Shown: piece after piece, positions 16,404 through 49,591 of the stretch
Layout: each line of letters starts with the position of its first letter
Position numbering within the stretch: position 1 is the first letter of the stretch
Source: Obrimoposthia wandeli
Lineage: Eukaryota
NCBI GenBank assembly: GCA_977020255.1
Contig: CDROCS010004529.1
Span: 1 to 64,000 of the forward strand
Direction of reading: 5' to 3'
Length of the DNA: 64,000 bases
Made by a program: the position numbers and the translations under genes
Notes under the pieces: model-generated
What the model was told of the DNA's origin: nothing
Databases searched by the model: none
The model's input: the letters and a program-made list of their open reading frames with translations, nothing else

Positions 16404-16441
16404 TATTTCCCTTACTGCTCTATCTAATGTAAAAGTCTAAG

Positions 16442-17398: not shown

Positions 17399-17399
17399 G

Positions 17400-18515
17400 C
17401 TACTTTCTCTGACTATATATTTTCATATGAACATCTATTACGTCCTCTATATCAAATTTCTGTTGTGCTAATTCTCTTGAGCGGTTGGCAAATCTATAGC
17501 GTAACTCTTTATCATCAATAAGTTTTAAAATAGCTTCAATCAATGGTATATAAGTTTTAGAAGGAATAAGTAACCCTGATTGATTAGCTAAAACAGCATC
17601 TCGACAGCCCGCTGTATCTGTCGTTATAACAGCTCTACCACAAGCCGCTGCTTCAATTAAGCTCTTCGGCAAACCTTCTCTATAGGAAGGCAACACAATT
17701 ATATTAGCTTGTGAAATTTCTCTTCTTACATCTGAGCTGAACCCCCAGTATTCAATATTTTTTTGACTGACCCATTTATCCAATTGAGGTTTAGTAATAG
17801 ATTGAGGGTTGCTCGGATCTAAATCACCTACTAAAACCATACGAATTTCAGGCCTTTGCTGTTTCAAAGCCGTTGCTGCGTGTACAAACTCATTAACCCC
17901 TTTATCAACCAGTAATCGAGCGATTAACATCACCACGGGAAAGTCTTCGGGTTCAGCAGTTGGTTGGTAATAGTTTAAATCCACCCCCGAACCTGCAGTA
18001 AATATTGAATTTGTGCTATCAACCGCTTTCATGTCAGCTAATATTTTATAGTCGGACTTATTGTGAAAAATAACCGCTGCTGCTTTTTTTAAGGCGATGC
18101 GATACAAAAAAGCGATGAATATTTTAAAAAGCCTAGTTTTGAATTTTTTCGCTATGAATAAGTGTCCCAATCCAGATATCGACGAAACTCTAACCGGTAT
18201 ATTGAATAATCTAGCAACAATATTACCGAACAACACAGGCTTGATAGTAACGGTATGTAATACATCCGGGTGCACCCTTTTTATGACACTAAATATTTGC
18301 CAAAGCAACTTCAACTCTGCTGGTAAACGAGTTCTTCCTCTTACTAAATTCAATGAATGCACTTTGATACCGGTAGCTTCTAGTTCTGCAGCTTTGCTAG
18401 TAACAGTGCAAGCCAAATGCACTTCATAACCTTCTTCCATCGCTTTTAATGCAATAGGAAGACGGTGCGATATGAAAAACCAATCAACATTGACGATATA
18501 CAGAATCTTTTTCAT
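17400..18515 (-). CDS. Glycosyltransferase family 4
   Basis: FFISHRLP, TIKPVLFG, IARLLVDKGV, PSYREGLPKSLIEA. Confidence 0.92.
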   Translation of the reverse strand: MKKILYIVNVDWFFISHRLPIALKAMEEGYEVHLACTVTSKAAELEATGIKVHSLNLVRGRTRLPAELKLLWQIFSVIKRVHPDVLHTVTIKPVLFGNIVARLFNIPVRVSSISGLGHLFIAKKFKTRLFKIFIAFLYRIALKKAAAVIFHNKSDYKILADMKAVDSTNSIFTAGSGVDLNYYQPTAEPEDFPVVMLIARLLVDKGVNEFVHAATALKQQRPEIRMVLVGDLDPSNPQSITKPQLDKWVSQKNIEYWGFSSDVRREISQANIIVLPSYREGLPKSLIEAAACGRAVITTDTAGCRDAVLANQSGLLIPSKTYIPLIEAILKLIDDKELRYRFANRSRELAQQKFDIEDVIDVHMKIYSQRK

Positions 18516-20482: not shown

Positions 20483-21660
20483 TAGATTAATTCCCCATTG
20501 TACAATGCTTTATAGAACTTCTTATATTGATCGTTAGTTTGGTTTTGACTGTAACACTCAACAACTCTTTGATAAGCCAATTCACGCATTTGCTGGCGCT
20601 GCGTCGGTGAACTCTTTAGCACTTTCATCATCCCCTGTGCTATAGATTCTGAATTCACTTGTGACACGACTACCGCTAATTGGTTATTAACCTGATGAGA
20701 GATTTCCTGTTGAATGCAGGCTAGCCGCTCATTGGGCTGTAGAATTTCACCGACATCTCCCACTGGCGTTGCCACACAGATACACTCAGCAGCCATTGCT
20801 TCGAGCAGAGCATTCGGGAATCCTTCTGTCCTTGAGGTTAAGCAAAAAACATCCATACTCGACAAATAGGCAGCGATATTGTCACTCTCCCCTAACAAGA
20901 ATGTTTTATCGCTTATACCGGCATTATCTAGCCATGTATCCAGTTGTTGATTATCAGCATCCATACCAGGACCGAGCATTAAAAAGCGCACTTGGGGAAA
21001 GTATTTAGCCACTTTTTTTGCAGATTCAACGAACAAATCAGGCCCTTTATCCTGACTAAACCGAGCAATAGTGCCGATCAACGGTTGTTGCTCTGTAATA
21101 CCCAAACGCTCTCGTAACTGCGATCTGCGGTGTGCATTGAAACTAAATCTTTCAGCATCGCAACCATTATTGATGATATGTAGTTTAGCCGGTGCGTAAC
21201 CTAATGCCCTGTGAGTTTCCAAGCTAGACTTAGCAACACACAATATTTTTGTCGGTAGCACGTAAGATAAAGCTGCAAGCAAAAATCTTATTATACTTGT
21301 CGCATAACTACCTTTTTTCAGCTTTGTTGTGCGCACTCCCCAAACAACTATTTTTACATGTGCCAATTTAGCGCTAATGCCACCGATCAGGTCTGCGTGG
21401 TACAACCATGTTTGCACTATATCGGGACGCAATTTTATCAATAATTTTCGTAACTCAATAACGGTTTTAAGCACACCAAACACATTATTCATTCCAAGTG
21501 CATAAACTTCAATGCCTTGCTGTTGCAGCAACTCACCTATTTCACCTACTTGAGTTAAAGAAACTACAACTGTCCTATCTGAAGAGGCTAGCACTAAGCG
21601 CTTGAGTGCATGCTCAGCGCCTCCAACATTTAACCCCGTTATAATATGCACTATTTTCAT
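20482..21660 (-). CDS. Glycosyltransferase family 4
   Basis: HIITGLNVGGAE, QTWLYHADL, EGFPNALLEAM. Confidence 0.9.
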   Translation of the reverse strand: MKIVHIITGLNVGGAEHALKRLVLASSDRTVVVSLTQVGEIGELLQQQGIEVYALGMNNVFGVLKTVIELRKLLIKLRPDIVQTWLYHADLIGGISAKLAHVKIVVWGVRTTKLKKGSYATSIIRFLLAALSYVLPTKILCVAKSSLETHRALGYAPAKLHIINNGCDAERFSFNAHRRSQLRERLGITEQQPLIGTIARFSQDKGPDLFVESAKKVAKYFPQVRFLMLGPGMDADNQQLDTWLDNAGISDKTFLLGESDNIAAYLSSMDVFCLTSRTEGFPNALLEAMAAECICVATPVGDVGEILQPNERLACIQQEISHQVNNQLAVVVSQVNSESIAQGMMKVLKSSPTQRQQMRELAYQRVVECYSQNQTNDQYKKFYKALYNGELI

Positions 21661-21742
21661 GGTGCTAGTAGTACTCTATGTAAAATCATTCGATTTTGTA
21701 ATGAATAATCGTAGCTGAATTTTTTCGAGAGAATAGCGGCCA

Positions 21743-22897
21743 TCATTGATCATGTTCTCCAATATTTTTAGGAGCGTTCTCGAGTACTACTTTTAAACGA
21801 TGAGCAGTATCATCTAACATTTTTTCAACAGTAAATTCACAGCTTATTCGATACCTATTTTTCAGTGCTATATCAGTTCTTTTTTGGCTCGCTAAATTTA
21901 CCACCGCCTTTGCCATAGCATTATCATCATCAGGTGCTACTATGACACCGCAATCACCTAATATGTATTTTGCATCACCAACATCTGTTGCAATGCAAGG
22001 AACACCGCAAGACATAGCTTCAGCAAGAGCGTTAGAAAAACCTTCCCCATAACAAGAAGCAGAGCAAAACATATCAATAGCACTGTATACTGCCGGCATA
22101 TTAGTCTGAATATCCGCAAAAATGATGCATTCATCCAGCGCTAACAATTGAATTTGCTGTACTAATTCTACTTTATATTCAATACTGCCAACACCGACAA
22201 AAACCACCCGTAAATTAGGTATGTATTCTCGCACTTTCACTACGGTTTTTAGGAACTCTAGCTGGTTTTTCATTTTTTCTAAACGACCAATCAAACCTAC
22301 TAAATACTGATCATCACTCACTTGCCAAAGCTTACGAAACTGATCTCTTAAACCTTTATTGTAGCTGAAGTATTCACTATCAATACCATTACCGATCACT
22401 GACATTCTTTCTTTACAGAAACCTTGAGCTACAGCATCACTCATTCCTGCATGGGAGTTTGAGATTGCCGCATCACAATATTTCGCTAGGACACCCTCCA
22501 GTTTATAGATTAAATTAGATAACCAGTCATTAGCGGTAAAATCTAATTTTGTAGCCCTCACCCCCCAAACAACAGGGGTTTTTGGGAGTATAAACTTAAC
22601 TAATAATGACAAAATATTTGCCACTGACATATAGCTATAAATTAATGCAGGGTGTTCATTTTTAAGTACTTTTACAAAGCGTATAACAAAAAATATCAAA
22701 TCCCAACGGCCTTTTTTGTTTAGACTAATCAAGCGTATATTGGAGTGCGCCAAAGATTGTTCATAAAACCCATCTGCATAGAAAGTAAGTACGACTACTT
22801 CAAATTCCCGGTCCGCTAAACCTTTTGCAGCGAGTAGCAGTTGACGCTCAGCACCACCTGCATTAAGAGAGCGTATAAAAAAAATAATTTTATGCAT
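21743..22897 (-). CDS. Glycosyltransferase family 4
   Basis: SLNAGGAERQ, IGRLEKMK, EGFSNALAEAMSCG. Confidence 0.9.
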   Translation of the reverse strand: MHKIIFFIRSLNAGGAERQLLLAAKGLADREFEVVVLTFYADGFYEQSLAHSNIRLISLNKKGRWDLIFFVIRFVKVLKNEHPALIYSYMSVANILSLLVKFILPKTPVVWGVRATKLDFTANDWLSNLIYKLEGVLAKYCDAAISNSHAGMSDAVAQGFCKERMSVIGNGIDSEYFSYNKGLRDQFRKLWQVSDDQYLVGLIGRLEKMKNQLEFLKTVVKVREYIPNLRVVFVGVGSIEYKVELVQQIQLLALDECIIFADIQTNMPAVYSAIDMFCSASCYGEGFSNALAEAMSCGVPCIATDVGDAKYILGDCGVIVAPDDDNAMAKAVVNLASQKRTDIALKNRYRISCEFTVEKMLDDTAHRLKVVLENAPKNIGEHDQ

Positions 22898-22918
22898 ATA
22901 TAATTACAATTTTTCGTC

Positions 22919-23629
22919 TTAATTTGACTTTTTACAAACAGCATAAATATTAGGTTGAGCGATTGCCGCTCCAAAACGTCCTAAAATATACCTTATGCAT
23001 GATTTTAAAAAATTCTTCGTGCCTTTTCTTTGCCAATCAGGGAAGCATCGAGAAATTATTCTTAAAGTCGTAAAATCTTTATTTTCTATTAGATTTTGTA
23101 ATGTTTCTATAGTAAATGATTGTTTATGTCCCCAACGGTGGTTACGCTCAGAACAATTAGCGCACACAACAACACTATCGTTTAAACGCTCTTCAAAAGG
23201 AACTGTAATAAACAACAACCCATTCAGTTTAAGAACCCTATGTATCTCTGAAAAAGATTTATCTGCTATTGAAACATCTAAATGCTCCAACACTTCAGAC
23301 ATAACAACGACATCAAATAATCCACTGGAAAATGGAATAGCGTCACTGTAACCAACTTGCGCTTTTTCGCTCAGTTGGTATTCACTTTTAACAGTTTCAA
23401 TTGCTCTTTCATTTGGATCTAACGAATAAATATCGATGTTCTTTTTTAAAGCTTCTCGTTCCAATATCCCCCCCCCTATACCTATATTTAATACAGTTAA
23501 TCCGCTACTTATTTGAGAAACTAGATAACGCAATCTAGGTAAACTTGCATCGAATGCATCTACACCTTCGTTTTGAAAGTAATCCCAAATTACTTCCTGC
23601 TCAGTAGAAGCCTTTTTTTCATCTGTCAT
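22919..23629 (-). CDS. Class I SAM-dependent methyltransferase
   Basis: VLNIGIGGG motif I, FDVVVMSEVLEHL, GLLFITVP. Confidence 0.85.
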   Translation of the reverse strand: MTDEKKASTEQEVIWDYFQNEGVDAFDASLPRLRYLVSQISSGLTVLNIGIGGGILEREALKKNIDIYSLDPNERAIETVKSEYQLSEKAQVGYSDAIPFSSGLFDVVVMSEVLEHLDVSIADKSFSEIHRVLKLNGLLFITVPFEERLNDSVVVCANCSERNHRWGHKQSFTIETLQNLIENKDFTTLRIISRCFPDWQRKGTKNFLKSCIRYILGRFGAAIAQPNIYAVCKKSN

Positions 23630-24936
23630 TATTTTGACCTTTTATTAAATTGCAATCTATACAAATAAAAGTAGATTAAACCACAAGATACCGCGTAAAC
23701 GATAACTGTGGAGATTGCAATTCCAGCAGTTCCAAAGTATTGCATTAAGATATAGTTTCCGAGAATGTTCGTGAGTAAATTAATTAAGGAAACCTTAAAG
23801 ATAATATAATTACCTTGAAGTGCATTTAATAGCTTAACGCCGACCATCCCTAATATGTAAAATGGAATCTGAAATACAAGTACCGCTTGTATCTGGCTTA
23901 CTACAAGTGTGTTTTGATAACCAAATCCCCCCCTTTCAAATACAAAACTCACCACTTCCCTCGCGTAGATAAACAACACAATAACAATAGGAAAACTACA
24001 ACCGATGATTAAAAAAACGTACACTTTTAAGCTAACATAAATATTATTCCAATCGTTCTTAGCTACAAGACCTGAAAAGTGGGGTAAAATCACACTACTC
24101 ACTGCAAACCCTGCTGTAGCCAAGACAAAGCCTGTTAGTTTGTTTGCATAGCTTAAAGTAGCAACATTACCCGCACCTAATGTCGCCGCCATTGTTTGAT
24201 CTACCAACAACGTACTTCCCATCAGTAAGCTACTAAGCAATATAGTTCTATAATTTAATGCACTTTGCTTGAGCATACCCGAAGCCCCATACCAACGGGG
24301 AATAATTGCATCACTTTTTCGAGCAGAAAACCAGAGTATAACAAGCTCTAATAATGCACCACTAACAACACCAACCACCAGCAATTCAACTTTAGGTTCA
24401 CTGGAATTTAGCAACAATAACAAAGTGATACTTGGAGTAATAATAGGTGTTAAAGTGGTTATTTTAAACCTTTGATGGGCGTTTAATACTAAAACATAAA
24501 ATTGTGCTGAGCCAGATATCAATAGAACTGAAACCAGCCAATAGCTTAAATTCACCGCTGTTATTGTCACCTCAAAGCTAAAGTTATAGCTTATTTTAGC
24601 CAGCACATATTCTAATACTGCCCACAACAGCACACTCAATCCGAACAAAAAAATAACACTTAAATACATTGCTGAACAGAGTAATTCTCTGGCCTGCTTA
24701 AATTTTTTATTACTGCATAGCTTCATGTAATTGGGCATCAGTGCGCCATTGATTGCGCCACCGAAAATGTTAAATATGAAAAGCGGTAACATAAATGCAA
24801 GAATAAATGCATCTAAATGAGCGCTGCTACCAAAGTAATTAGCTATTGCTATTTCTTTACCCGCAACAAAGAAATTAGCTATGACAGCTAACAACACAAC
24901 GGACAACATTGAGGATAAAACTCTTTTCATGTTCAA
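23629..24936 (-). CDS. MurJ/MviN-like lipid-linked oligosaccharide flippase
   Basis: KEIAIANYFGSSAHLDAFILAFMLP N-terminal MurJ motif, LSYANKL, VSFVFERGGF; multiple TMs. Confidence 0.8.
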   Translation of the reverse strand: MNMKRVLSSMLSVVLLAVIANFFVAGKEIAIANYFGSSAHLDAFILAFMLPLFIFNIFGGAINGALMPNYMKLCSNKKFKQARELLCSAMYLSVIFLFGLSVLLWAVLEYVLAKISYNFSFEVTITAVNLSYWLVSVLLISGSAQFYVLVLNAHQRFKITTLTPIITPSITLLLLLNSSEPKVELLVVGVVSGALLELVILWFSARKSDAIIPRWYGASGMLKQSALNYRTILLSSLLMGSTLLVDQTMAATLGAGNVATLSYANKLTGFVLATAGFAVSSVILPHFSGLVAKNDWNNIYVSLKVYVFLIIGCSFPIVIVLFIYAREVVSFVFERGGFGYQNTLVVSQIQAVLVFQIPFYILGMVGVKLLNALQGNYIIFKVSLINLLTNILGNYILMQYFGTAGIAISTVIVYAVSCGLIYFYLYRLQFNKRSK

Positions 24937-25021
24937 AGAAACGCCTTTTTCTCTGATTTATTGAAATTTTTCAGAGTTTCAATATACATTCTTATCTGCC
25001 ACTTACCCTAATCACTCATTC

Positions 25022-26038
25022 CTAGAACTTATCAATGATCCAAGGCAACATTTCATCTAGCCCCTCCTTTAATTTATAACCAGGGTGGTAGTTTAGTTGA
25101 TCTTTTATTCGATAAATATCTGCTTGTGAGTGCTGAATATCTCCCTTTCTAAATTCTAGATGTATAGGATTTTTACTATAAAAAATAGACTTTTTAGCGA
25201 GGCTATCCACCATTTCACTATACAATTCTAACAGTGAGGTTCGCTCACCTAAAGCAACGTTATAAATTTTATTGAGCGCATCAGGTTTAGCTGTTGCAGC
25301 GAGAATATTGGCTTGAACGACATTATCGATAAAACAAAAGTCACGACTTGTTTGGCCATCACCATTTATCATAATGTCATCATCTTTTAACATAGCGCAG
25401 ATCCACTTAGGGATAACTGCCGCATATGCACCCGCTGGATTTTGGCGTTTACCAAAAACGTTAAAATAGCGTAGCCCTATGCTATTAAACTGATAACTCT
25501 TATAAAAAACATCAGCGTAAAGCTCATTAACATATTTAGTAACAGCGTAAGGAGATAAAGGTTTCCCTATGATATCTTCACGTCGTGGCTGAGCTGGGTG
25601 GTCTCCATATGTAGAACTTGAAGCGGCATAAACAAAATTCTCTACCTTTGCCTGCCTCGCTGTATCTAACACGTTCAGAAAGCCTGTAATGTTAGCTGCA
25701 TTTGTTAACAAAGGCTTGTCTAACGAGCGCGGAATTGAGCCTAAGGCTGCTTGATGAAGTACATAGTCAATATTTTGCATAACTTGCTCACACTGCGTCA
25801 CATCACCGATATCTCCTTCTACAAACTCAAAGTTTCTCCACTGTATCTCACTCACTACTGCCTCAACTTCGGTCAGGTTACTCATAAAACCTGTAGACAA
25901 GTTATCTAAACCTACTACTTTTTGATTTAATTTAAGCAGCTCTTCGAGCAGATTAGAGCCTATAAAACCTGCAACCCCGGTAATTAACCAGCGTTTTGGC
26001 TGGGCAAGCAATCTCTTTTTAACTATGTTGTAATGCAA
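25022..26038 (-). CDS. wbpP: UDP-GlcNAc(A) C4-epimerase (WbpP/TviC family)
   Basis: [58 protein letters not shown]. Confidence 0.9.
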
Positions 26039-26283
26039 TATAAACCCCTTAGCGGCTGTATTGACGAATCGATTGTTAATATTTATTGCAAAGATGACAA
26101 TAACTTAGCATTTGATGAACTTAATGCACTGGTAACGAACAAAAAATACGCTATGTAAAAGAAGCTGCTATTAGCGTAGCTATTTTAATATAACTAAAAT
26201 TAATTTAGCTTTACAACATAAGATCGTCGTTTATTAAAGCATTTATACCAAATTCATTTACGTTCATCACGAAAAACCTTATA

Positions 26284-27558
26284 TCACAGCCTTATCGTAG
26301 AAGACTCTTTATCCAATACATACTTTAAATCATAAACAACATGTTTTTCTTTACAAAAACCATGTATTTGTTCTGCTTGCAGCTCTCTAAATTCATCATG
26401 AGCTACAGCTATCACTATTGCATCATATTCATCATTTTTAGGTTCACTTAAACTCAAGCCATATGAACGCTGTATCTCATTAGCATCGCACCAAGGATCT
26501 GTTATTTCAACCTCGATACCAAATTCAGTTAATTCGCGAACGATATCTATTACTCTAGTATTTCTTATATCTGGGCAGTTTTCTTTAAAAGCAAAACCCA
26601 TAATAAGCACTTTTGCACCTTGTACTTGAATCTTTTTCTTGAGCATCGCTTTAATTAATTGCGAAGCAACGTACTGCCCCATACCATCGTTTAATCTTCT
26701 ACCCGCCAATATCATCGCTGGATGGTAACCTACACTTTGTGCTTTATGGGTTAAATAATAGGGATCAACACCGATACAATGCCCTCCTACTAGGCCTGGT
26801 CTAAAGGGTAGAAAATTCCACTTACTTCCCGCCGCTTCTAATACTTCTAACGTATCTATTTCTAATTTATTGAAAATAATTGCTAACTCATTAACTAATG
26901 CAATATTTACATCTCGCTGAGTATTTTCAATAACTTTAGCAGCTTCCGCTACTTTAATAGACGATGCTTTATAAGTTCCTGCGGTAATAATTAAGTTGTA
27001 TACATAATCTACAAAATTTGCAGTTTCACTATTTGAGCCCGCCGTTATTTTTTTAATACTCGTGACCCTATGAACTTTGTCACCAGGATTTATTCGCTCA
27101 GGACTATAACCAATAAATAAATTTTTATTAAACTCTAAACCAGATATTTTTTCTAGAATTGGTACGCACACTTCTTCAGTTGTGCCGGGGTAAACCGTAG
27201 ATTCGTAAACGACAACATCGTTTTTTCTTACCACTTTTCCAAGTAATGTACTCGCTTCTTTCAAAGGCGTTAAATCAGGCTGTTTACTTGCGTCTATGGG
27301 TGTTGGCACTGTCACTATATAAAAATTACAATCCACTAATTCATCAACTTCATGAGTCAGTGATAATCTATTTGCAGATTCTAGCTCTTCACTACTGACT
27401 TCTAATGTAACATCTTGACCATTAGATAAATTTGAGATCCTTTCTTCATTAATATCAAAACCAATCGTTGTTATTTTTTTACCGAATTCTACCGCTAATG
27501 GTAAACCAACATACCCCAAACCTATGACTGCAATTTTAATATCTGCTAGTTCTAACAT
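26284..27558 (-). CDS. wbpO: UDP-N-acetylhexosamine 6-dehydrogenase (WbpO/TviB family)
   Basis: [48 protein letters not shown]. Confidence 0.92.
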
Positions 27559-28070: not shown

Positions 28071-29192
28071 TTAATTCAACTTCACGGAGGCAAAGCTGGA
28101 TTCTCCGCTTGCAGCGCTGAGCACTTGATGTACCTGAGATTCTTGCACGAGATTGACTGATCTCATATCCATTTCTAAAGTACCAAAATCGAGGCGTGTG
28201 TCTGTCCACATGCCTGTACGGTCTTCTCGGGGAGAGAATCCAATATGCTTTCGATAACAACGGCTAAAATGAGGTGTCGAGACAAAACCACACGCAGAAG
28301 ATACTTCTATAATTGATAAAGTCGTTTGTTTTAATAATTGCCTCGCTCTATCTAATCGAAGCTTTAAATAATACCTCGAGGGTGTGCAATTTAAATAACG
28401 GTGAAATAATCGTTCTAACTGACGCCTAGAAACACTGACAAAGCTTGCCAGCTCATCTAAGTCTATCGGCTCTTCTATATTTGCTTCCATTAACTCTACT
28501 ATTTCTACTAATTTAGGCTGCGCAGTACTCAGAAGATGACGCAGTGGTACTTTTTGCTGATCTCCTTGTGAACGCACTCTATCGCATACAAACATGTCAG
28601 ATATAGCGCTGCATAATGCACGACCGTGATGCAAAGCAATAATATACAACATCATGTCCATCGGCGCTCCGCCACCTGAACAGGTAAGTCTATTTCTATC
28701 ATGGGTAAAAAGGCGTCGATTACATTTTACTTTCGGAAAAGCTTCTTGCAAAGGAGCGATATATTCCCAATGCGCACTGCATTCATATCCATCCATTAAT
28801 CCTGCATCAGCTAACAAGTAAGCTCCTGTGCAAATCCCACCTAATACAACTTTTTTAGCTGCTAAAGACTTGACCCAATTAATTTCTGCTTTAGTATATT
28901 TTTTTGAAACATTGATGCCACCAGCAACAATCAGCGTATCCAGAGGTGGCGCATTATGCATTGCAGCATCAACCTCTACTTTCATGCCATCACTAGCTTT
29001 CACACTTTTACCATCAGCATTTAATAAATACCAACTGTACAATTCTTTACCTGATAACTGATTTGCCATCCGTAATGGCTCAACTGCTGAGGCTAGCGCT
29101 ATCATGGAATAATCACCCAGCAGCAAAAAGCCAATACGTGAAGTTTTAACATTTGAGAAGGGATCTGCTGATATTGTAGCCTGTGTATCCAT
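28071..29192 (-). CDS. gbdR: GlxA-family AraC regulator, glycine-betaine responsive type
   Basis: IGFLL...LASAVEPLRMANQLSGKELY, GGICTG, and QPKL...MEANIEEPIDLDELA...SRRQLERLF HTH, close to Pseudomonas GbdR. Confidence 0.8.
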   Translation of the reverse strand: MDTQATISADPFSNVKTSRIGFLLLGDYSMIALASAVEPLRMANQLSGKELYSWYLLNADGKSVKASDGMKVEVDAAMHNAPPLDTLIVAGGINVSKKYTKAEINWVKSLAAKKVVLGGICTGAYLLADAGLMDGYECSAHWEYIAPLQEAFPKVKCNRRLFTHDRNRLTCSGGGAPMDMMLYIIALHHGRALCSAISDMFVCDRVRSQGDQQKVPLRHLLSTAQPKLVEIVELMEANIEEPIDLDELASFVSVSRRQLERLFHRYLNCTPSRYYLKLRLDRARQLLKQTTLSIIEVSSACGFVSTPHFSRCYRKHIGFSPREDRTGMWTDTRLDFGTLEMDMRSVNLVQESQVHQVLSAASGESSFASVKLN

Positions 29193-39985: not shown

Positions 39986-40134
39986 ATTAGTCTCCGGTTT
40001 GATTTATGTTGCTCTTTAACTCATTGATTTCACGTTAACTACAAGTGTTATTTGGCTTAAAAATTCCAATTACCTATACTAGAAAACCTTAAATCAATGA
40101 GTAAAGAGCTTACCCTATTTAACCGGACAGCAAT
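39986..40134. mobile_element. MITE-like palindromic element, family B, copy 1
   Basis: Ends ATTAGTCTCCGGTT / AACCGGACAGCAAT, internal ACTCATTGATTT/AAATCAATGAGT arms; homologous copy at 42579. Confidence 0.8.
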
Positions 40135-42169: not shown

Positions 42170-42578
42170 AATAATTCCCTTTATAAAATTAATCGCTTTG
42201 ATGGGTGTCTTTACCACAAAAAAACTATAATAGTGAACGTCCATGTAAAAATTAATTTCGTATAATTTAGTAAAACTAAAAAAGGCAGTCTCTGACTCCA
42301 AGTCATAGATTAAAGTGCGTTTAAAAGCTTAATAATTGTTACTTATCCCTGCCGTCTAGTTATTTTATTTAAAGAAGAGTTAGCTGCTAGGCTTCGCACT
42401 TTAAAGATGGTGTAGCGCTAGCATCAAATCTTGCTAATACGCCACGAAGGTGGGCCTAAGTTGCTAGTACCAGCTTTGCCCAATAGATAAAATAACATGG
42501 CTAGAATAATTACACATAAAGATAATTATCATTAGGTGTGAAAAGTTGCATCTTCTCCTAATTTTACCGTTTAATACC

Positions 42579-42728
42579 ATTAGTGTCCGGTTAAATTTTT
42601 GTTGTTCTATAACTCATTGATTTTACGTTAACCATAACGTGCTATTTGGCTGAAATAATCCAATTAACTATGCTAGAAAACCACAAATCAATGAGTAAAG
42701 AGCTTACATTTTTTAACCGGACAGCAAT
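42579..42728. mobile_element. MITE-like palindromic element, family B, copy 2
   Basis: ATTAGTGTCCGGTTAAA / TTTAACCGGACAGCAAT TIRs; about 85% identical by eye to 39986-40134, same orientation. Confidence 0.8.
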
Positions 42729-42969
42729 AGTTTAATACATTGAATTGCTCCTCCTTGTTCATGTATTACATAGCTATCTACGCTATTTGACCACCCCTAC
42801 CTCTATTTAGTATTACCTTTACCAGCTTCTTTTTTTGTATATACATTATTTTTATATGTTTTTTGCAGAATGAATTTACCTGAAAAAACGCTGCTTTTAA
42901 TACACATAAAGTGCCTTTAACAACAGATAATTGAAAAATCAGTATCAAATACTAATTATTATCCAATAA

Positions 42970-42981
42970 TGGTATAGACAA
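42970..42981. promoter_or_regulatory. Candidate GntR/HutC-type operator upstream of the kinase operon
   Basis: TGGTATAGACAA fits the HutC-subfamily GTnTAnAC palindrome. A second site TTGTATATACAT lies at 42835-42846. Confidence 0.6.
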
Positions 42982-43053
42982 AACATAAAAAGATGATTTA
43001 ATATTGATTTAACCATAACGAACATGGCTTAGAATAATAATACGAGGCAATGT

Positions 43054-43941
43054 ATGAGTTTATCTGCAAAATTGCGGGCTGAACAGCTTAGCTGTTGGGA
43101 AGAATCCGTAACAGCCATTCCACTTGCGGGAGGGCTAACCAATACAAACTTCACAGTCCACTATCAAGAAAAAGATTATGTAGTGCGTATCGGTGAAGAC
43201 ATTCCGATTCATGGCGTAATGCGCTTTAACGAGCAAAATGCCAGTGTGGCAGCTTTTAAGGCGGGAATATCACCTGAAATTATACATATTCAAGAAGATG
43301 CTTTAGTCATGCGCTTCATAAAAGGGCGAACTTTGAATGCAGTTGATTTACAAAATCAAAGCATGTTAGAGCGCGCCCTACCACTTTTAAAACGCTGTCA
43401 CAATGATGTGCCAAATTACTTAAAAGCCGGCTCTTTGAGTTTTTGGGTGTTTCAGGTGAATCGTAATTATGCGGGTTCACTGAATGAAACTCAAAGCTTG
43501 TATAAAAAGCAGATAGCACGTTTGATGGAAATTAACATTGAACTGGAGAAAGCGGTGGGCAGGGTCACTATGGCTTTTTGCCATAATGATATGTTAGCGG
43601 CAAACTTTATCGACACACCAAACAAACTATGGCTAATCGACTGGGATTACGCCGGATTTAATAGCCCTTTATTCGATTTGAGTAATTTAGCAACTAACAA
43701 TGGTTTGAGTTATCAGCAGGAAGTTTGGCTGTTAGAAAACTACTTTGAAACACCGATCAATAATAAGTTATGGCGCAGCTACTGTGCCATGAAATGCGCT
43801 TCACAGTTGCGCGAATCTATGTGGAGTATGGTTTCAGAAGAGTACTCCAACTTAGATTTTGACTATCGAGAATACACTCAAGACAATCTGGATCGCTTTC
43901 AACAAGCCTATCGAGAATTTACTGCCCTAGGGGAGAGATAA
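43054..43941 (+). CDS. Choline/ethanolamine kinase family phosphotransferase
   Basis: LAGGLTNTNF, YVVRIG, FCHNDMLAANFI (Brenner motif), LIDWDYAG, FDL. Confidence 0.88.
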   Translation: MSLSAKLRAEQLSCWEESVTAIPLAGGLTNTNFTVHYQEKDYVVRIGEDIPIHGVMRFNEQNASVAAFKAGISPEIIHIQEDALVMRFIKGRTLNAVDLQNQSMLERALPLLKRCHNDVPNYLKAGSLSFWVFQVNRNYAGSLNETQSLYKKQIARLMEINIELEKAVGRVTMAFCHNDMLAANFIDTPNKLWLIDWDYAGFNSPLFDLSNLATNNGLSYQQEVWLLENYFETPINNKLWRSYCAMKCASQLRESMWSMVSEEYSNLDFDYREYTQDNLDRFQQAYREFTALGER

Positions 43942-43946
43942 TAAAT

Positions 43947-46394
43947 ATGAGTTTACCTAATCAAGCACAAATCGTCATTATTGGCGGCGGCATAATAGGC
44001 TGCAGCACTGCCTACCATTTAGCAAAGGAAGGTGCTAAAGATGTAATCTTGCTTGAGGGAGGGCAGCTGACTAACGGCTCTACCTGGCACGCTGCCGGGC
44101 TAGTAGGACAGTTGCGCAGTTCAGCAAACATCACTCAATTACTCAAAAACTCTGTTGATTTGTACAAAAATCTCGAAGCAGATACAGGGCTGGCAACAGG
44201 TTGGAAGATGAATGGCGGTCTACGTTTAGCTTGTAATAAAGATCGCTGGACAGAGGTTAAACGTCAAGCGACAACGGCGCATAGTTTCGGATTGCCCATG
44301 GAATTACTCAGTGCGAGTGAAGCGCAAGATTTATGGCCTTTAATGGATGTATCCGATGTGGTCGGGGCGGCTTTTCTACCCACAGATGGCCAAGCAAACC
44401 CTTCGGACATTACTCAATCACTGGCTAAAGGTGCCAGAATGCGCGGCGTGAAAATTTTTGAAAACACGCGGGTAACCGGTATTGAGGTTATCAATGGTGC
44501 TGTTGTTTCTGTGCAGACAACCGCGGGAAAAATCAACTGCGAAAAAGTCGTCAACTGCTGTGGCCAATGGGCTAAAGACGTAGGCAATATGGCTGGGGTC
44601 AACGTCCCTTTACAAGCTGTTGAACATCAATATATGGTAACAGAACCCCTTAAGCCGGTGGCTGTACCCTCAAATTTACCCACTTTGCGCGATCCGGACA
44701 GGTTAATATACTTTAAAGAAGAAGTGGGCGGATTAGTGATGGGTGGCTACGAGCCCAACCCAATCGTTTGGGCTAAGCATGGCATCCCCGACAACTTTTA
44801 TTTTTCATTGCTCAACGAAAACTGGGATCACTTTGAACAATTAATGGAACAGGCACTAATACGGGTACCTGCATTGGAAACAGCAGGCATTCGTACCTTA
44901 ACTAATGGCCCTGAATCTTTCACTCCCGATGGCAACTTCATTTTAGGCGAAGCACCTGAGGTTAAAAACTTCTTTGTGGGTGCTGGTTTTAACGCTTTTG
45001 GCATTGCTTCAGGGGGTGGTGCAGGACGCGCGCTAGCTGAGTGGGTAATAGCAGGTGAGCCACCAATGGATTTATGGCCAGTGGATATTCGCCGCTTTAG
45101 CCAAGTACATCGTGATGCTGAATTTGTCTGCAAGCGCACTTTAGAAGCTTATAGTAAACACTATACGATGAGCTGGCCTCACGAGGAGCATACAAGCGGC
45201 CGACCTATTTTAACCTCGCTTCTCTACCCTACTCTTAAAGATCAAGGGGCATGTTTCGGCTCTAAAAACGGTTGGGAGCGCCCTAACTGGTTTGCCCCAG
45301 CCGGTGTTGTTCCACAAGATGAATATTCATACGGGCGTCAAAATTGGTTTGACGCGGTAGGTGAAGAGCATTTAGCTTGTCGCGAATCTGTAGTGGTTTT
45401 TGATCAGAGCTCTTTTGCCAAGTTTAGACTGCAAGGCACAGATGCAACCAAAGCATTAAATTGGATTTGTGCTAATGATATAGATAAAGCAGTTGGTAGC
45501 TTAATTTACACACAAATGCTCAATGATAGAGGGGGCATTGAGTGTGACTTAACCATTTGCCGCAGCGCTGAAAATGATTACTACATAGTGACAGGCACTG
45601 GTTTTAGAGTGCATGACTATCAATGGATCAAAAGCAATTTAGATCCGAGCTGGGATGTACAGCTAACTGATATTACCCAGCAGTGGACAACACTGTCCTT
45701 AATGGGGCCTAATTCAAGAGCAGTGTTAGCACAATTAACCACGACAGATATCAGTAACCAGGCCTTTCCCTTTGCAACTTTACAAACTCTCACTATCGCA
45801 GGCCACGAGCTTAAAGCACTGCGTGTAACCTATGTAGGTGAACTGGGGTGGGAATTACATATGCCTCGCGCAGCCGGCAGTGATGTGTACCAGGCCTTGA
45901 TGCACGCTGGTGCCCAATTTTCGATTCGTAACGCAGGCTATCGCGCCATTGAATCACTGCGTTTAGAGAAAGGATATCGGGCTTGGAGTTCTGATTTAAC
46001 ACCAGACCACACCCCTTTTGAAGCGGGTTTAGGTTGGGCTGTAAAACTTAAATCGCAAATTGATTTTAAAGGGCGCCCTGCACTTGCAGCACTGTATAAC
46101 CAACCACTTAAAAAACGTATGGTATGTTTTAGTATCGCAGATCCCGCTGTAATTTTACTGGGTAGGGAGACAATTTATCGCAATGGTGAAGCGGTGGGCT
46201 ACCTAACCAGCGGCGGTTGGGGTTATACCGTGCAAGCAAATATAGGTTACGGCTATGTCAAATGCGCAGCCGGGGTCGATATACAATACTTAAAGGATGG
46301 TAAATATGAGTTGGAGATAGCTTGTGAAAGAGTACCTTGCCAGCTGCAACTAGCTCCTTTGTATGATCCTAAAATGCTTAGAGTAAAGGCTTAA
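43947..46394 (+). CDS. GcvT-family FAD-dependent oxidoreductase (sarcosine/dimethylglycine dehydrogenase-like)
   Basis: GGGIIG, GSTWHAAGL, GPESFTPDG, GWERPNWF, and C-terminal GcvT folate-binding domains (YTQMLNDRGGIECD, SLRLEKGY). Confidence 0.92.
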   Translation: MSLPNQAQIVIIGGGIIGCSTAYHLAKEGAKDVILLEGGQLTNGSTWHAAGLVGQLRSSANITQLLKNSVDLYKNLEADTGLATGWKMNGGLRLACNKDRWTEVKRQATTAHSFGLPMELLSASEAQDLWPLMDVSDVVGAAFLPTDGQANPSDITQSLAKGARMRGVKIFENTRVTGIEVINGAVVSVQTTAGKINCEKVVNCCGQWAKDVGNMAGVNVPLQAVEHQYMVTEPLKPVAVPSNLPTLRDPDRLIYFKEEVGGLVMGGYEPNPIVWAKHGIPDNFYFSLLNENWDHFEQLMEQALIRVPALETAGIRTLTNGPESFTPDGNFILGEAPEVKNFFVGAGFNAFGIASGGGAGRALAEWVIAGEPPMDLWPVDIRRFSQVHRDAEFVCKRTLEAYSKHYTMSWPHEEHTSGRPILTSLLYPTLKDQGACFGSKNGWERPNWFAPAGVVPQDEYSYGRQNWFDAVGEEHLACRESVVVFDQSSFAKFRLQGTDATKALNWICANDIDKAVGSLIYTQMLNDRGGIECDLTICRSAENDYYIVTGTGFRVHDYQWIKSNLDPSWDVQLTDITQQWTTLSLMGPNSRAVLAQLTTTDISNQAFPFATLQTLTIAGHELKALRVTYVGELGWELHMPRAAGSDVYQALMHAGAQFSIRNAGYRAIESLRLEKGYRAWSSDLTPDHTPFEAGLGWAVKLKSQIDFKGRPALAALYNQPLKKRMVCFSIADPAVILLGRETIYRNGEAVGYLTSGGWGYTVQANIGYGYVKCAAGVDIQYLKDGKYELEIACERVPCQLQLAPLYDPKMLRVKA

Positions 46395-46408
46395 CTGTTA
46401 AGTTATGC

Positions 46409-46482
46409 CCATCCATAAGCAAAGTCGCTAGAGTGCTGCAATGATTTAAATTTTGTACATTTTACTCTTTGCTGATGGATGG
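46409..46482. repeat. 74-bp inverted-repeat element downstream of the GcvT-like gene
   Basis: CCATCCATAAGCAAAG / CTTTGCTGATGGATGG 16-bp arms with 1 mismatch. Confidence 0.6.
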
Positions 46483-46588
46483 ATTAGTGATTAAAAAGAC
46501 AAAAGAATGAAAACTAATATTAGAGAAAAAATCGATACTACCAATAAAACATGTTAATTTTATATTTTTCCTGCCTATAAATGAATAA

Positions 46589-46600
46589 TTGCATAGACAA
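46589..46600. promoter_or_regulatory. Candidate GntR operator (autoregulatory site)
   Basis: TTGCATAGACAA (reverse complement TTGTCTATGCAA), 46 bp upstream of the GntR start. Confidence 0.5.
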
Positions 46601-46646
46601 TACTATAGAATGGTTACTATTAATGACTATTTTATAGAAGCATTCA

Positions 46647-47630
46647 ATGACTAATCACTCCATTGCTAAAAGCATTTCCCACACTTTGATTATCCGTGAG
46701 TATATACTTGAATTAATCGGGAAAAACGCACTCAACAAACAAAATAAATTACCCGCAGAAAGACTGTTATGTGAACGCTTTAGCATCACACGGATTACTC
46801 TGCGACAAGCGATGGTGCAGCTAGAAACAGAAGGCTTTGTTTACCGACAACATCAGCGAGGTTGGTATCTGTCTCCCCCGAGAATACTTTATGATCCAAC
46901 CAAGAATTTAAGTTTCACAGCATTAGTACTCAGCCAGGGAAGAGTGCCATTAAATCGTATTTTATCTAGTAAAAGACAGCTTGCTGATAAAACAATGCGA
47001 AAGGCTTTGCAATTACAAGAGCATGAAACTGATCTATATTTGATAGAGCGGTTGCGCTCAGTTGATGGTCGACCTGTGATGGTAGAGCATTTGTACATCA
47101 ATGCTGCATTGTGTGAAGGTATTCTCGATTGCGCTATAGAGCAGTCTCTAACTGAGTTATTAAAACAGCATTTTGCCGTCGAAATTGTTCGCTCCAGTGT
47201 CAACTTGCATTCAACAGCTCTGACTCAAACACAAGCAAAAGAGTTACACGGAGCAGCAGGCACTCCCTCTATCAGTGTTATACGCACCAATTATGATCAG
47301 CAAGGGCGTGTGATAGAAATTGATCATGAGTTTTGGCGACACGATGCTCTGGAAATTACCGCTAGCTCATCCCCTAACACTTCCTTTGACAAAAACAATG
47401 GGCACAACTTTACAAATACAGTAGATGCGGCAACTAAGCAGCCAATAGTCACTTATAATTTTTCAGTGGCCTTAAATACTCTGATAAGTGAATACACCAC
47501 AGGTGTGCAACAAAGTGCTCTACAACTGCAGCAGCTGAACAAAGAATTCAACGATTATCGTCTTCGTACAGATAATGAACTAATGCTGTGTCGTTCGCGG
47601 ATAGCTACTTTAGAAGAAAATGCTGATTAA
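46647..47630 (+). CDS. GntR (HutC/PhnR-like) regulator with UTRA domain and extra C-terminal extension
   Basis: KLPAERLLCERFSITRITLRQA wHTH, UTRA ending at EIDHEFWRHDAL, plus ~85 additional residues. Confidence 0.9.
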   Translation: MTNHSIAKSISHTLIIREYILELIGKNALNKQNKLPAERLLCERFSITRITLRQAMVQLETEGFVYRQHQRGWYLSPPRILYDPTKNLSFTALVLSQGRVPLNRILSSKRQLADKTMRKALQLQEHETDLYLIERLRSVDGRPVMVEHLYINAALCEGILDCAIEQSLTELLKQHFAVEIVRSSVNLHSTALTQTQAKELHGAAGTPSISVIRTNYDQQGRVIEIDHEFWRHDALEITASSSPNTSFDKNNGHNFTNTVDAATKQPIVTYNFSVALNTLISEYTTGVQQSALQLQQLNKEFNDYRLRTDNELMLCRSRIATLEENAD

Positions 47631-47666
47631 CACAGCAATAGATTTAATCTCAGTGTTAAATGACGA

Positions 47667-47700
47667 CAACTGAACACTCTTGTTGGTTTGTGTTCAGTTG
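47667..47700. terminator. Hairpin between convergent gntR and eutH
   Basis: CAACTGAACAC / GTGTTCAGTTG 11-bp perfect stem. Confidence 0.55.
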
Positions 47701-47870
47701 ACTAATTAGCATAACCGAGCCTGCAGCAACTGCTAGGACCTGTTACAGCTACTGAGCAATCCCTATACCCATGTTAAGCTCCACTCTTAGAAGACTTTCA
47801 TATCAAGGGCCTAGGAACCGACCCCTGATGGTTTTTCTTGTATCTGGCGTCTCCTCACACTCTCTGTCTG

Positions 47871-49100
47871 TTACACTGTGGCATCTTTATTTTCTTGTTG
47901 CTCAAGAGCTTGATCTTGCTCTAGTAATTTAGCGGCGGGGACTGCAATCCATAACGCGATGACAAAGCCTGCGGCACCGCCTACCAGTTTACCCAGCAGT
48001 ATCGGCAAAATCATATTGGGCTGAAAATTAGCCGTAAATGCCAAGTGATCGCCAAACATAAAGGCACCACACACGGCAAAGGCTATGCATAAAACTTTAT
48101 CGCGAGCCTTCATATCGCCAATTAAATGAAACATTGCCAAGATATTTGCAGCTGCTGCAAGTAATCCTGCTGCACCAACCGTATCCATACCTAAGCGACT
48201 GCCAAAAAAGGTCATGGGCCCAGCGAGATATTTTTTAATCATATAAACCATAGGGAATGCACCTGAAAGCATAATACCTATGTAACCGGCAATTTCTAAG
48301 GCTCTAAACATATCCGCCTCATCAGCAATGATAGGATCAAAGCCCCAGCCGCCTAAAACATTAGTGAATACTCCGGTAAAGTACTCGACGATAGAAAAGA
48401 CTAGCACCAGCTTTAGTACAGCATCCATAGTGCGACCAAACACTAAAAAACCTCTAATCATCTGCGAAGGGAACAGCTTTAAACCGATAGCAATACTGAT
48501 ACACACGATGATGAGAGGTAATATATTAATCAAAATAGTGCCTGCATCTAAAGCTAAGGCCAATGAAGACTCACTGTTGGTTGAAACAATCTCTCGCACC
48601 CCGGGGTTAGATAAACCAACCAATAAACTGGCGACGAACACCCCCACTGGAACACTGAGAATACCCGCCATTACCCCTAACGCCATATACTTATGATCAG
48701 CTTCTTTAAGCATCGCTAGGCCAACGGGGATAGAGAAAACGATAGTGGCCCCTGCCATGTAACCTACTACCATAGCAATAATCCAACCTTCACGGCTTTG
48801 TGCTAAGTTATCAGCCAGTTGATAACCTCCCATATCTACCGCGATGAAAGTTGTCGCTGCAATTGCAGGATCTGCACCAATTGCAGAGAATAAAGGTCCA
48901 AAAACCGCGGATATAAATTGAGAGAGGTAGGGAATAGAGGCCATGATCCCAGCCACGGGAACAAATATTGGCCCGATACTGTAAATACCACTCATAAATT
49001 CGGCACCTAAGCCGGTTTCGTGATTGCGGATGGATGCGAAAGCTCCGATTACCGCACATATCATTATTAGATAAATGACATAGTTACCAATTTCAGCCAT
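47871..49100 (-). CDS. eutH: EutH-family ethanolamine transporter
   Basis: GPIFVPVAGIMA, DMGGYQLA, GATIVFSIPVGL, ALEIAGYIGIMLSGAFPM, FGDHLAFTANFQP. The start is the ATG at 49100. Confidence 0.9.
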   Translation of the reverse strand: MAEIGNYVIYLIMICAVIGAFASIRNHETGLGAEFMSGIYSIGPIFVPVAGIMASIPYLSQFISAVFGPLFSAIGADPAIAATTFIAVDMGGYQLADNLAQSREGWIIAMVVGYMAGATIVFSIPVGLAMLKEADHKYMALGVMAGILSVPVGVFVASLLVGLSNPGVREIVSTNSESSLALALDAGTILINILPLIIVCISIAIGLKLFPSQMIRGFLVFGRTMDAVLKLVLVFSIVEYFTGVFTNVLGGWGFDPIIADEADMFRALEIAGYIGIMLSGAFPMVYMIKKYLAGPMTFFGSRLGMDTVGAAGLLAAAANILAMFHLIGDMKARDKVLCIAFAVCGAFMFGDHLAFTANFQPNMILPILLGKLVGGAAGFVIALWIAVPAAKLLEQDQALEQQENKDATV

Positions 49101-49265
49101 GTTAACTCCTTTTTTATCGTTATTAGATGTGAGCTTGCTTAACATCGATCTTTGCGTACAAAAAGCAAACACAATTCGATATAGCGTATTCATTTAAGCA
49201 TTATTGCCTATTCATTAACAAGTATAAAATCTAGAATTAGACCACAAAACAAATTTTATTATTTT

Positions 49266-49277
49266 TTGTCTATACGA
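49266..49277. promoter_or_regulatory. Candidate GntR operator upstream of eutH
   Basis: TTGTCTATACGA, 11/12 identical to the reverse complement of the site at 42970 (TTGTCTATACCA). Confidence 0.6.
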
Positions 49278-49591
49278 TTTTAAAAATATAAAAATATAAA
49301 AAACTAAAAAAATAGAGTAGATATTCTTAATCGCTATAAAATCCTGAGGTTTATGCACAAAGTATCGATCGATAATAAAGAAGAAATTGGTAAAATAGCA
49401 TTATCAGCGTATCTCTGCTCGTTGCGCATTACTGAAGTAAATGAGCCTATGAGCCGGTTTTTAACGTTGTATCATTAAGCGATGCTATTATCTGCTCTGG
49501 GTAAACTATACTCAGATCTCACCCCAATACTTGGTTATTATAGATAACGTCAATATCGTCAAACTGCTAGGGTAACACCACTATTTTTTTA

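Follow-up and report, generated by a model that had tools for sequence, protein, structure and literature searches.

A four-gene bacterial unit with a EutH permease, proposed to demethylate N-methylated ethanolamines in a kinase-dependent manner

A four-gene unit comprising an importer, a kinase, a folate-dependent flavin dehydrogenase and a regulator has been identified in a marine bacterium, and most likely serves to strip methyl groups from N-methylated ethanolamine after phosphorylating it. The unit lies in a 64-kb window (the whole stretch of DNA analysed, positions 1 to 64,000 of contig CDROCS010004529.1, assembly GCA_977020255.1). Its kinase-dehydrogenase core is widespread in bacteria, and no description of such a pair, or of bacterial demethylation of phospho-methylethanolamines, was found in the literature searched. 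The proposed function rests on comparative genomics only, with the substrate being inferred, and a probability of about 0.6 is assigned to it.

Gene content of the locus

Four open reading frames have been confirmed, at 43054-43941(+), 43947-46394(+), 46647-47630(+) and 47871-49193(-), and together with the associated operator-like sites they constitute the following features:

42833..42844 (-), distal operator-like site, GTATATACAAAA, with the palindromic core GTATATAC, about 130 bp upstream of the proximal site
42968..42983 (+), proximal HutC-type operator, AATGGTATAGACAAAA, the core of which begins 82 bp upstream of the kinase ATG
43054..43941 (+), choline/ethanolamine-kinase-family small-molecule kinase (295 aa), a proposed N-methylethanolamine kinase
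43947..46394 (+), FAD- and folate-dependent dehydrogenase of the DMGDH/SARDH family (815 aa), a proposed phospho-N-methylethanolamine N-demethylase
46585..46612 (+), conserved block upstream of the regulator gene, holding a weaker operator-like site, GCATAGACAATA
46647..47630 (+), PhnR-like GntR/HutC-family regulator with a UTRA effector domain and a C-terminal extension of about 90 aa
47871..49100 (-), EutH-family permease (409 aa from the corrected start), the proposed importer of the amino alcohol
49264..49280 (-), operator upstream of eutH, AAATCGTATAGACAAAA, about 165 bp upstream of the ATG

The kinase matches the Pfam Choline_kinase family (PF01633) with 86.6 bits, against a cut-off of 29, and its best solved relatives are the choline kinases 3dxq and LicA 4r77. 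Segments which appear to represent the Brenner phosphotransferase motif (HNDLLAANF, following the pattern HNDLxxxN) and the choline-kinase motif (IDWDYAGFNSPLFDL) have been detected, with their key residues invariant in an alignment of 22 sequences. The dehydrogenase (DH), whose ATG is 5 bp from the kinase stop, shows a DAO + FAO_M + GCV_T + GCV_T_C architecture, with all four domains scoring above their cut-offs, and scores 553 bits to rat DMGDH. Its STWHAAGL, EHQY, IYF and ECD segments align with DMGDH His91 and with DMGO His225, Tyr259 and Asp552 (PMC5082570), which indicates that the covalent-FAD His, the His/Tyr dyad and the likely folate-site Asp are conserved.

In the regulator, Pfam GntR and UTRA domains have been detected. 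The best NCBIfam hit is PhnR (TIGR03337), although its 255.6 bits fall below the 296.75 cut-off, and the C-terminal extension has no family match. The permease scores 651 bits against the EutH model NF011668, above its cut-off of 575. Its true start is almost certainly at 49100, as placed by the first-pass annotation, considering that an AAGGAG ribosome-binding site precedes this position, that sequence conservation begins there and that the family model starts at residue 32 of the longer open reading frame. A tblastn search with E. coli EutA/B/C/L/E/G found nothing in the 64-kb window except EutH, and no PhnW/PhnA/PhnY homologue, phosphatase or ethanolamine-degrading gene lies in it. The upstream MCP gene and the downstream S15 hydrolase, MocR and EamA genes are not conserved with the module beyond the 97%-identical relative and are not regarded as parts of it, while the 13-27 kb region is a polysaccharide cluster and is unrelated.

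Conserved operators

A conserved HutC-type operator with the core GTATAGAC lies upstream of the kinase operon, of eutH and, more weakly, of the regulator gene. The exact 12-mer occurs only twice in the 64 kb, at the proximal kinase site and upstream of eutH, where it has the same orientation relative to its gene. Comparison with related loci (designated here by an L and a number) has shown that the proximal block is invariant in L081 and L083 within a diverged spacer, at the same distance from the ATG, and AATGGTATAGACAA also lies 96 bp upstream of the kinase in L001. The distal site is a 1-mismatch copy of the 12-mer, and the same TTTTGTATATAC is present upstream of the kinase in L081 and L083. 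The eutH operator is conserved in L081 within an otherwise diverged spacer. The block upstream of the regulator gene, which differs from the 12-mer at 2 positions, is nearly invariant in L081 and L083, with one A/G difference, while the flanks diverge, and autoregulation is probable. Syntenic copies of the regulator gene exist in L081-L083 and L001. A promoter and terminator scan performed no better than shuffles.

Genomic context of the kinase-dehydrogenase pair

The kinase-dehydrogenase pair is not a local arrangement. In 52 of 70 loci with enough sequence, a DH-family gene starts within 350 bp downstream of the kinase on the same strand, whereas 18 of the 70 lack the dehydrogenase. The loci span Alpha-, Gamma- and Deltaproteobacteria, SAR324, Myxococcota, Acidimicrobiia and Bacteroidota. 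Thousands of metagenomic proteins also match the pair, whose members are annotated only as "phosphotransferase" and "GcvT family protein". A second, paralogous kinase (25% identical) sits next to a second dehydrogenase (47% identical) in 5 loci. DH1 and DH2 both score about 554 bits to mammalian DMGDH, which is uninformative as to whether either is the "true" DMGDH.

The usual partners of the pair are a DeoR regulator and an OpuAC/ProV/ProW (OpuA-type) ABC importer, replaced in this lineage by the PhnR-like GntR/UTRA regulator and EutH. EutH takes the place of the ABC system in the window, L083, L084, L090, L085 and L156, in five different gene orders, and the EutHs linked to the pair form one clade (100/99 support) nested among EutHs that sit in eutABC operons. 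All kinase-linked EutHs descend from one recruitment, so that the five arrangements are not independent gains. EutH has also been detected beside LicC-LicA-like kinase fusions in L120 and L136, and beside a choline-kinase-family hit in L143.

Additional aspects of the related loci are consistent with a phosphorylated substrate. The regulators are of phospho-ligand types (DeoR, RpiR-SIS or PhnR-like UTRA), and a histidinol-phosphatase-like gene is present in 9 of 80 loci, lying directly after the dehydrogenase in L155 and L156. A GlpT/PgtP-type MFS carrier is adjacent to the dehydrogenase of L085 (DH85) and to the DH1 orthologue in L157, where no kinase is adjacent, suggesting that such an organophosphate carrier can stand in for importer plus kinase. 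ETF genes lie next to the dehydrogenase in L001, L084 and L158. In L158, from Parasalinivibrio latis, an operon of GS-like ligase, aldehyde DH, Fe-ADH, GATase amidohydrolase and phosphatase is transcribed divergently from kinase-DH-ETF and matches, at the level of domain content only, the gamma-glutamyl ethanolamine pathway (PMC10132767). The phosphatase and these pathway-type genes point to ethanolamine as the end product, and so to N-methylated ethanolamine as the substrate.

Proposed function

Taking these observations together, the unit is best read as a self-contained catabolic system for N-methyl- and/or N,N-dimethylethanolamine. In this model, EutH lets the amino alcohol in and the kinase phosphorylates its hydroxyl, trapping it and providing the anionic group that DMGDH-type enzymes need next to the amine. 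The FAD/THF dehydrogenase would then oxidise the N-methyl group and pass the C1 unit to tetrahydrofolate, yielding phosphoethanolamine and 5,10-methylene-THF, with electrons going to ETF. Phosphoethanolamine would subsequently be dephosphorylated, and the ethanolamine degraded by genes outside this window. The PhnR-like protein is proposed to bind GTATAGAC-type operators before the kinase operon, eutH and its own gene, and to be released by the phospho-intermediate. The identity of the substrate, the order of the steps, the effector and a repressor rather than activator mode are all inferred, without biochemical or expression evidence, and no RNA runs contain this DNA.

The first-pass annotation had proposed a B12-independent route in which an N-methylated ethanolamine-type compound is imported by EutH, phosphorylated, and demethylated or oxidised, with the phospho-intermediate as inducer. 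Each element of this inference has gained independent comparative support, although none of it amounts to biochemical proof, and the system is a lineage-specific variant of a very widespread module rather than a one-off. In a broader reading, perhaps as likely as not, many marine and soil bacteria run a "reverse phosphobase" pathway, in which mono- and dimethylethanolamine are phosphorylated, demethylated on the phosphate ester by a DMGDH-like enzyme that delivers the methyl carbon to tetrahydrofolate, and then dephosphorylated to ethanolamine, with EutH, an ABC importer or a GlpT-type carrier as interchangeable entry points. Methylated ethanolamines are head groups of common bacterial and algal lipids and products of anaerobic choline demethylation, and no aerobic bacterial route for them was found in the literature searched. 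If the proposed function holds, a large family of unassigned DMGDH paralogues gains a function, EutH serves something other than the B12-dependent lyase, and phosphorylation acts as a substrate handle for a flavin amine dehydrogenase.

Alternative explanations

It is possible, although unlikely, that the dehydrogenase is an ordinary dimethylglycine or sarcosine dehydrogenase of glycine-betaine/choline catabolism and that the kinase has a separate role. The closest solved relatives are mammalian DMGDH, ETF is adjacent in some loci, and OpuAC-type binding proteins, together with BetA/BetB-like neighbours and a GbdR-like regulator in L001 and L090, would also fit betaine-related substrates. Nonetheless, dimethylglycine and sarcosine have nothing to phosphorylate, yet a kinase is tightly coupled (gaps of 5-80 bp) across phyla, a second paralogous kinase-DH pair exists, and a phosphatase, phospho-ligand regulators, EutH and a GlpT-type carrier all accompany the dehydrogenase. 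No NCBIfam model reaches its cut-off for this enzyme, and close homologues are named only generically or by automatic labels. A similarly low likelihood is given to ethanolamine itself as the substrate, with the flavoenzyme oxidatively deaminating phosphoethanolamine in a B12-independent route. This would agree with the kinase family and with the EutH clade, which is 55-73% identical to the EutHs of eutBC operons among which it is nested. However, the dehydrogenase keeps the complete folate-binding half and its likely key Asp, which is only useful for a C1 unit taken from an N-methyl group, and the phosphatase accompanying the pair in L155, L156 and L158, with a full gamma-glutamyl-type ethanolamine gene set in L158, would result in a futile cycle.

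A role in aminophosphonate metabolism, with demethylation of N-methyl-2-aminoethylphosphonate and sensing of a phosphonate, appears the least likely. The best family of the regulator is PhnR, a 51%-identical dehydrogenase lies with a GlpT-type carrier and PhnW/PhnA/PhnY in L085, PhnW lies near the kinase in L029 (confirmed by NCBIfam) and a PhnW homologue (45%) lies near it in L004, and N-methyl-AEP oxidation by other FAD enzymes is known (PMC10590968). Even so, a phosphonate needs no kinase, the window and most loci have no phn genes, EutH and betaine-type ABC importers do not fit anionic phosphonates, and the PhnR score is below its cut-off. Activity on both the phosphonate and its phosphate-ester look-alike is possible and would not contradict the main reading. 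The same logic of import, phosphorylation and demethylation could also apply to a different N-methylated amino alcohol, such as an N-methylated aminopropanol, serinol or homoserine derivative, since nothing in the sequences fixes the carbon skeleton and the phosphatase partner is closest to histidinol-phosphatase, which acts on a substituted amino-alcohol phosphate. This remains improbable, as the EutH ancestry, the choline/ethanolamine kinase motifs, the PhnR-like sensor (AEP being the phosphonate look-alike of phosphoethanolamine) and the gamma-glutamyl ethanolamine-type neighbours all point to the two-carbon ethanolamine skeleton.

Relationship to characterised systems

The dehydrogenase shares its four-domain build and aligned catalytic residues with mitochondrial dimethylglycine/sarcosine dehydrogenase and Arthrobacter dimethylglycine oxidase (PMC5082570). 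It is, however, roughly 40% identical as judged by eye from the alignment and always coupled to a small-molecule kinase or to an organophosphate carrier, with a phosphatase in a number of loci, and its proposed substrate carries a phosphate ester where the known enzymes bind a carboxylate. The kinase belongs to the same fold family as LicA and the eukaryotic CK/EK, which feed CDP-choline or CDP-ethanolamine biosynthesis, whereas here the phosphate is proposed as a catabolic handle that is removed again by a HisN-like phosphatase. When compared to the eut operon, where EutH occurs with the B12-dependent EutBC and a microcompartment, this EutH clade is always beside kinase-DH instead. The regulator shares its GntR + UTRA architecture with the PhnR regulator of 2-aminoethylphosphonate utilisation, but carries the C-terminal extension, has no phn genes beside it and is proposed to control the kinase-DH and eutH units.

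The PbfB/PbfC/PbfD FAD oxidoreductases also carry out flavin-dependent oxidation of an N-methyl-2-aminoethyl-P compound, N-methyl-AEP, but are single-domain DAO proteins that produce phosphonoacetaldehyde (PMC10590968), while the present enzyme has a folate domain and should remove only the methyl group. The gamma-glutamyl ethanolamine pathway of Chromohalobacter/Phaeobacter starts from free ethanolamine taken up by a TRAP system (PMC10132767). Gene sets matching it at domain level neighbour the pair in Parasalinivibrio latis and, partly, in L156 and L084, and the module described here would sit upstream of this pathway and feed it.

Identity of the four genes

The four ORFs were confirmed at the positions assigned to them by the first-pass annotation. 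They encode, in order:

a choline/ethanolamine-kinase-family protein
an 815-aa dehydrogenase with DAO, FAO_M, GCV_T and GCV_T_C domains
a GntR + UTRA regulator, whose best curated family is PhnR, at 255.6 bits against a cut-off of 296.75
a convergent EutH, which passes its curated cut-off (651 against 575)

The kinase stop and the dehydrogenase start are separated by 5 bp. The start of eutH is almost certainly at 49100, rather than at the longest-ORF start of 49193, since an AAGGAG site precedes it and conservation with a relative begins there. E. coli EutA/B/C/L/E/G proteins found nothing else in the window. The regulator also carries a C-terminal extension of about 90 aa beyond the UTRA domain (47364-47630), for which no NCBIfam match was detected. 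This extension is conserved in the 54%-identical regulator of L001, another locus carrying the kinase, where the tblastn alignment runs to residue 325.

Distribution of the kinase-dehydrogenase pair

The kinase has thousands of relatives at 50-70% identity, and in one genome per species 587 of 600 pattern-matched stretches encode a relative. In 52 of 70 loci with at least 1.5 kb downstream, a DMGDH-family gene starts within 350 bp on the same strand, with these loci spanning Alpha-, Gamma- and Deltaproteobacteria, SAR324, Myxococcota, Acidimicrobiia and Bacteroidota. Reciprocal look-ups point the same way, with three of four dehydrogenase orthologues (71-80% identical) having the kinase directly upstream and the fourth having a carrier instead. 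A second kinase (25% identical to the first) sits next to a second dehydrogenase (47% identical) in five loci (L008, L020, L033, L043 and L045), in the order dehydrogenase-kinase and often right beside the first pair. Kinase-dehydrogenase pairing has therefore arisen or been kept twice, and the second pair may handle a different methylation state.

Transporters and regulators associated with the pair

The common arrangement comprises a divergent DeoR regulator, followed by an OpuAC binding protein, a ProV ATPase, a fused ProW permease, the kinase and the dehydrogenase. A relative with a 65%-identical kinase, from an Oceanospirillaceae MAG, has this arrangement. In the lineage of the window both the importer and the regulator are replaced, and EutH lies beside the pair in five different orders (L numbers denote the fetched loci):

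kinase-dehydrogenase-GntR facing EutH: the window, L081 and L083
kinase-dehydrogenase facing EutH: L090
kinase-dehydrogenase-ETF-ETF facing ETF-QO and EutH: L084
EutH divergent from the kinase: L085
EutH-kinase-dehydrogenase-phosphatase in one direction: L156

In a tree of 53 EutH proteins these six form one clade (100/99), nested among EutHs that sit in eutABC operons. This means one recruitment from an ethanolamine operon, after which the linkage survived repeated rearrangement. EutH also lies directly after a fused nucleotidyltransferase and choline-kinase gene (LicC-LicA-like) in loci L120 (2672-5598) and L136 (1873-5015), lineages in which it would supply an amino alcohol for CDP-activation rather than for catabolism, and beside a choline-kinase-family hit in L143. 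Feeding an amino alcohol from EutH to a kinase is therefore not unique to this module.

Regulatory sites and other elements

The 12-mer GTATAGACAAAA occurs exactly twice in the 64 kb, with one copy beginning 82 bp before the kinase ATG and the other located about 165 bp before the eutH ATG, both in the same orientation relative to their genes. The kinase site is invariant in relatives whose kinases are 97% and 86% identical, at the same distance and within a spacer that has otherwise diverged, and a second, palindromic site (GTATATAC) lies about 130 bp upstream in all three. AATGGTATAGACAA also lies 96 bp before the kinase in L001, whose kinase is 70% identical and which is the only other lineage with this regulator. 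Among 158 fetched loci, the 10-mer GTATAGACAA has nine matches, five of which are at these predicted positions. The eutH site is conserved in L081, while a weaker site before the regulator gene is conserved in L083. The core GT-N-TA-N-AC appears to correspond to the usual operator shape of the HutC subfamily.

Other elements were noted in the window:

42584-42723: a MITE-like fold-back element of about 140 bp in the kinase upstream spacer, with terminal inverted repeats TGTCCGGTTAAA / TTTAACCGGACA, the terminal motif occurring again at 40118-40129
46409-46482: a 16-nt inverted repeat (94% complementary, 42-nt loop) following the dehydrogenase stop
28071-29192 (-): an AraC + DJ-1/PfpI regulator (GbdR-like)
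15363-27558 (-): a long polysaccharide biosynthesis operon with TviB- and TviC-like genes (TviB model above its cut-off), several GT4 glycosyltransferases and an asparagine-synthase-type amidotransferase

The 186-nt stretch containing the fold-back element (42560-42745) folds at -25.6 kcal/mol (z = -4.65), and the element may be related to the dispersed fold-back families noted just beyond the window. The inverted repeat is conserved in L081 but absent in L083, and is not a classical terminator. The GbdR-like regulator is 76% identical to the one that lies between the ETF genes and the GntR regulator in L001, although here it is 14 kb away, next to the MFS-fusion gene.

Predicted activities and evidence for a phosphorylated substrate

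The dehydrogenase aligns over its full length with rat and human DMGDH and with Arthrobacter DMGO, keeping the histidine that carries the covalent FAD, the His/Tyr dyad and the folate-site aspartate (PMC5082570). It should therefore be an active enzyme that oxidizes an N-methyl group and hands the C1 unit to THF. Such flavin enzymes need a lone pair on the nitrogen, and choline or phosphocholine, which are quaternary, cannot be the substrate. ETF genes follow the dehydrogenase in L001, L084 (with ETF-QO) and L158, the Parasalinivibrio latis locus, so it is a dehydrogenase and not an oxidase. The kinase keeps both motifs of choline/ethanolamine kinases, and its best solved relatives are choline kinases.

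Gene context suggests that the dehydrogenase substrate is phosphorylated and that the product is phosphoethanolamine. The regulators found with the pair are DeoR, RpiR-SIS or PhnR-like UTRA, all types which usually bind phosphorylated ligands or, for PhnR, the phosphonate look-alike of phosphoethanolamine. A histidinol-phosphatase-like gene (225-272 bits, just under the 275 cut-off) occurs in 9 of 80 loci in varied positions, and directly follows the dehydrogenase in Ruegeria marisrubri and in L156. Histidinol phosphate is itself an amino-alcohol phosphate. A GlpT/PgtP-type MFS carrier (the two copies are 77% identical) sits next to the dehydrogenase orthologue in L157 (9001-12862), with no kinase adjacent, as well as next to a 51% paralogue in L085 (5656-13237), beside PhnW, PhnA and PhnY. 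Where an organophosphate can be imported directly, the kinase is not needed. The L085 arrangement suggests folate-dependent demethylation of N-methylated aminoethylphosphonate. PehA-like phosphoric/sulfuric ester hydrolases (560-611 bits, below the 900 cut-off) lie next to the module in L087 (2305-3873) and L029 (11440-13065), and may release the head group from a diester.

In P. latis, an operon encoding a glutamine-synthetase-like ligase, an aldehyde dehydrogenase, an iron alcohol dehydrogenase, a GATase-type amidohydrolase and the phosphatase is transcribed divergently from kinase-dehydrogenase-ETF. At domain level this is the gamma-glutamyl ethanolamine pathway described for Phaeobacter and Chromohalobacter (PMC10132767), with partial versions occurring in L156 and L084. 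A phosphatase plus an ethanolamine pathway next to an ethanolamine kinase would be a futile cycle, while the arrangement makes sense if the kinase acts on a methylated precursor.

Proposed pathway and alternatives

The proposed route consists of import of N-methyl- and/or N,N-dimethylethanolamine through EutH, phosphorylation, THF-dependent oxidative demethylation to phosphoethanolamine, followed by dephosphorylation and ethanolamine catabolism elsewhere. The window lacks the phosphatase and any ethanolamine pathway. The regulator would be released by the phospho-intermediate. While the gene-level observations are established, the substrate, the effector and the order of steps are inferred in the absence of expression or biochemical evidence.

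An ordinary DMGDH does not explain the kinase, the phosphatase, EutH or the organophosphate carrier, and ethanolamine as the substrate does not explain the intact folate half or the phosphatase. A phosphonate role is suggested by the PhnR-like regulator and by PhnW neighbors, but a phosphonate needs no kinase; nonetheless, dual activity on the phosphonate and the phosphate ester remains possible. A different amino-alcohol skeleton cannot be excluded.

Neither the pair nor this chemistry was found in the literature searched, and public names for the proteins are generic. The pathway logic and this EutH/GntR variant appear undescribed, while the enzyme families are known.
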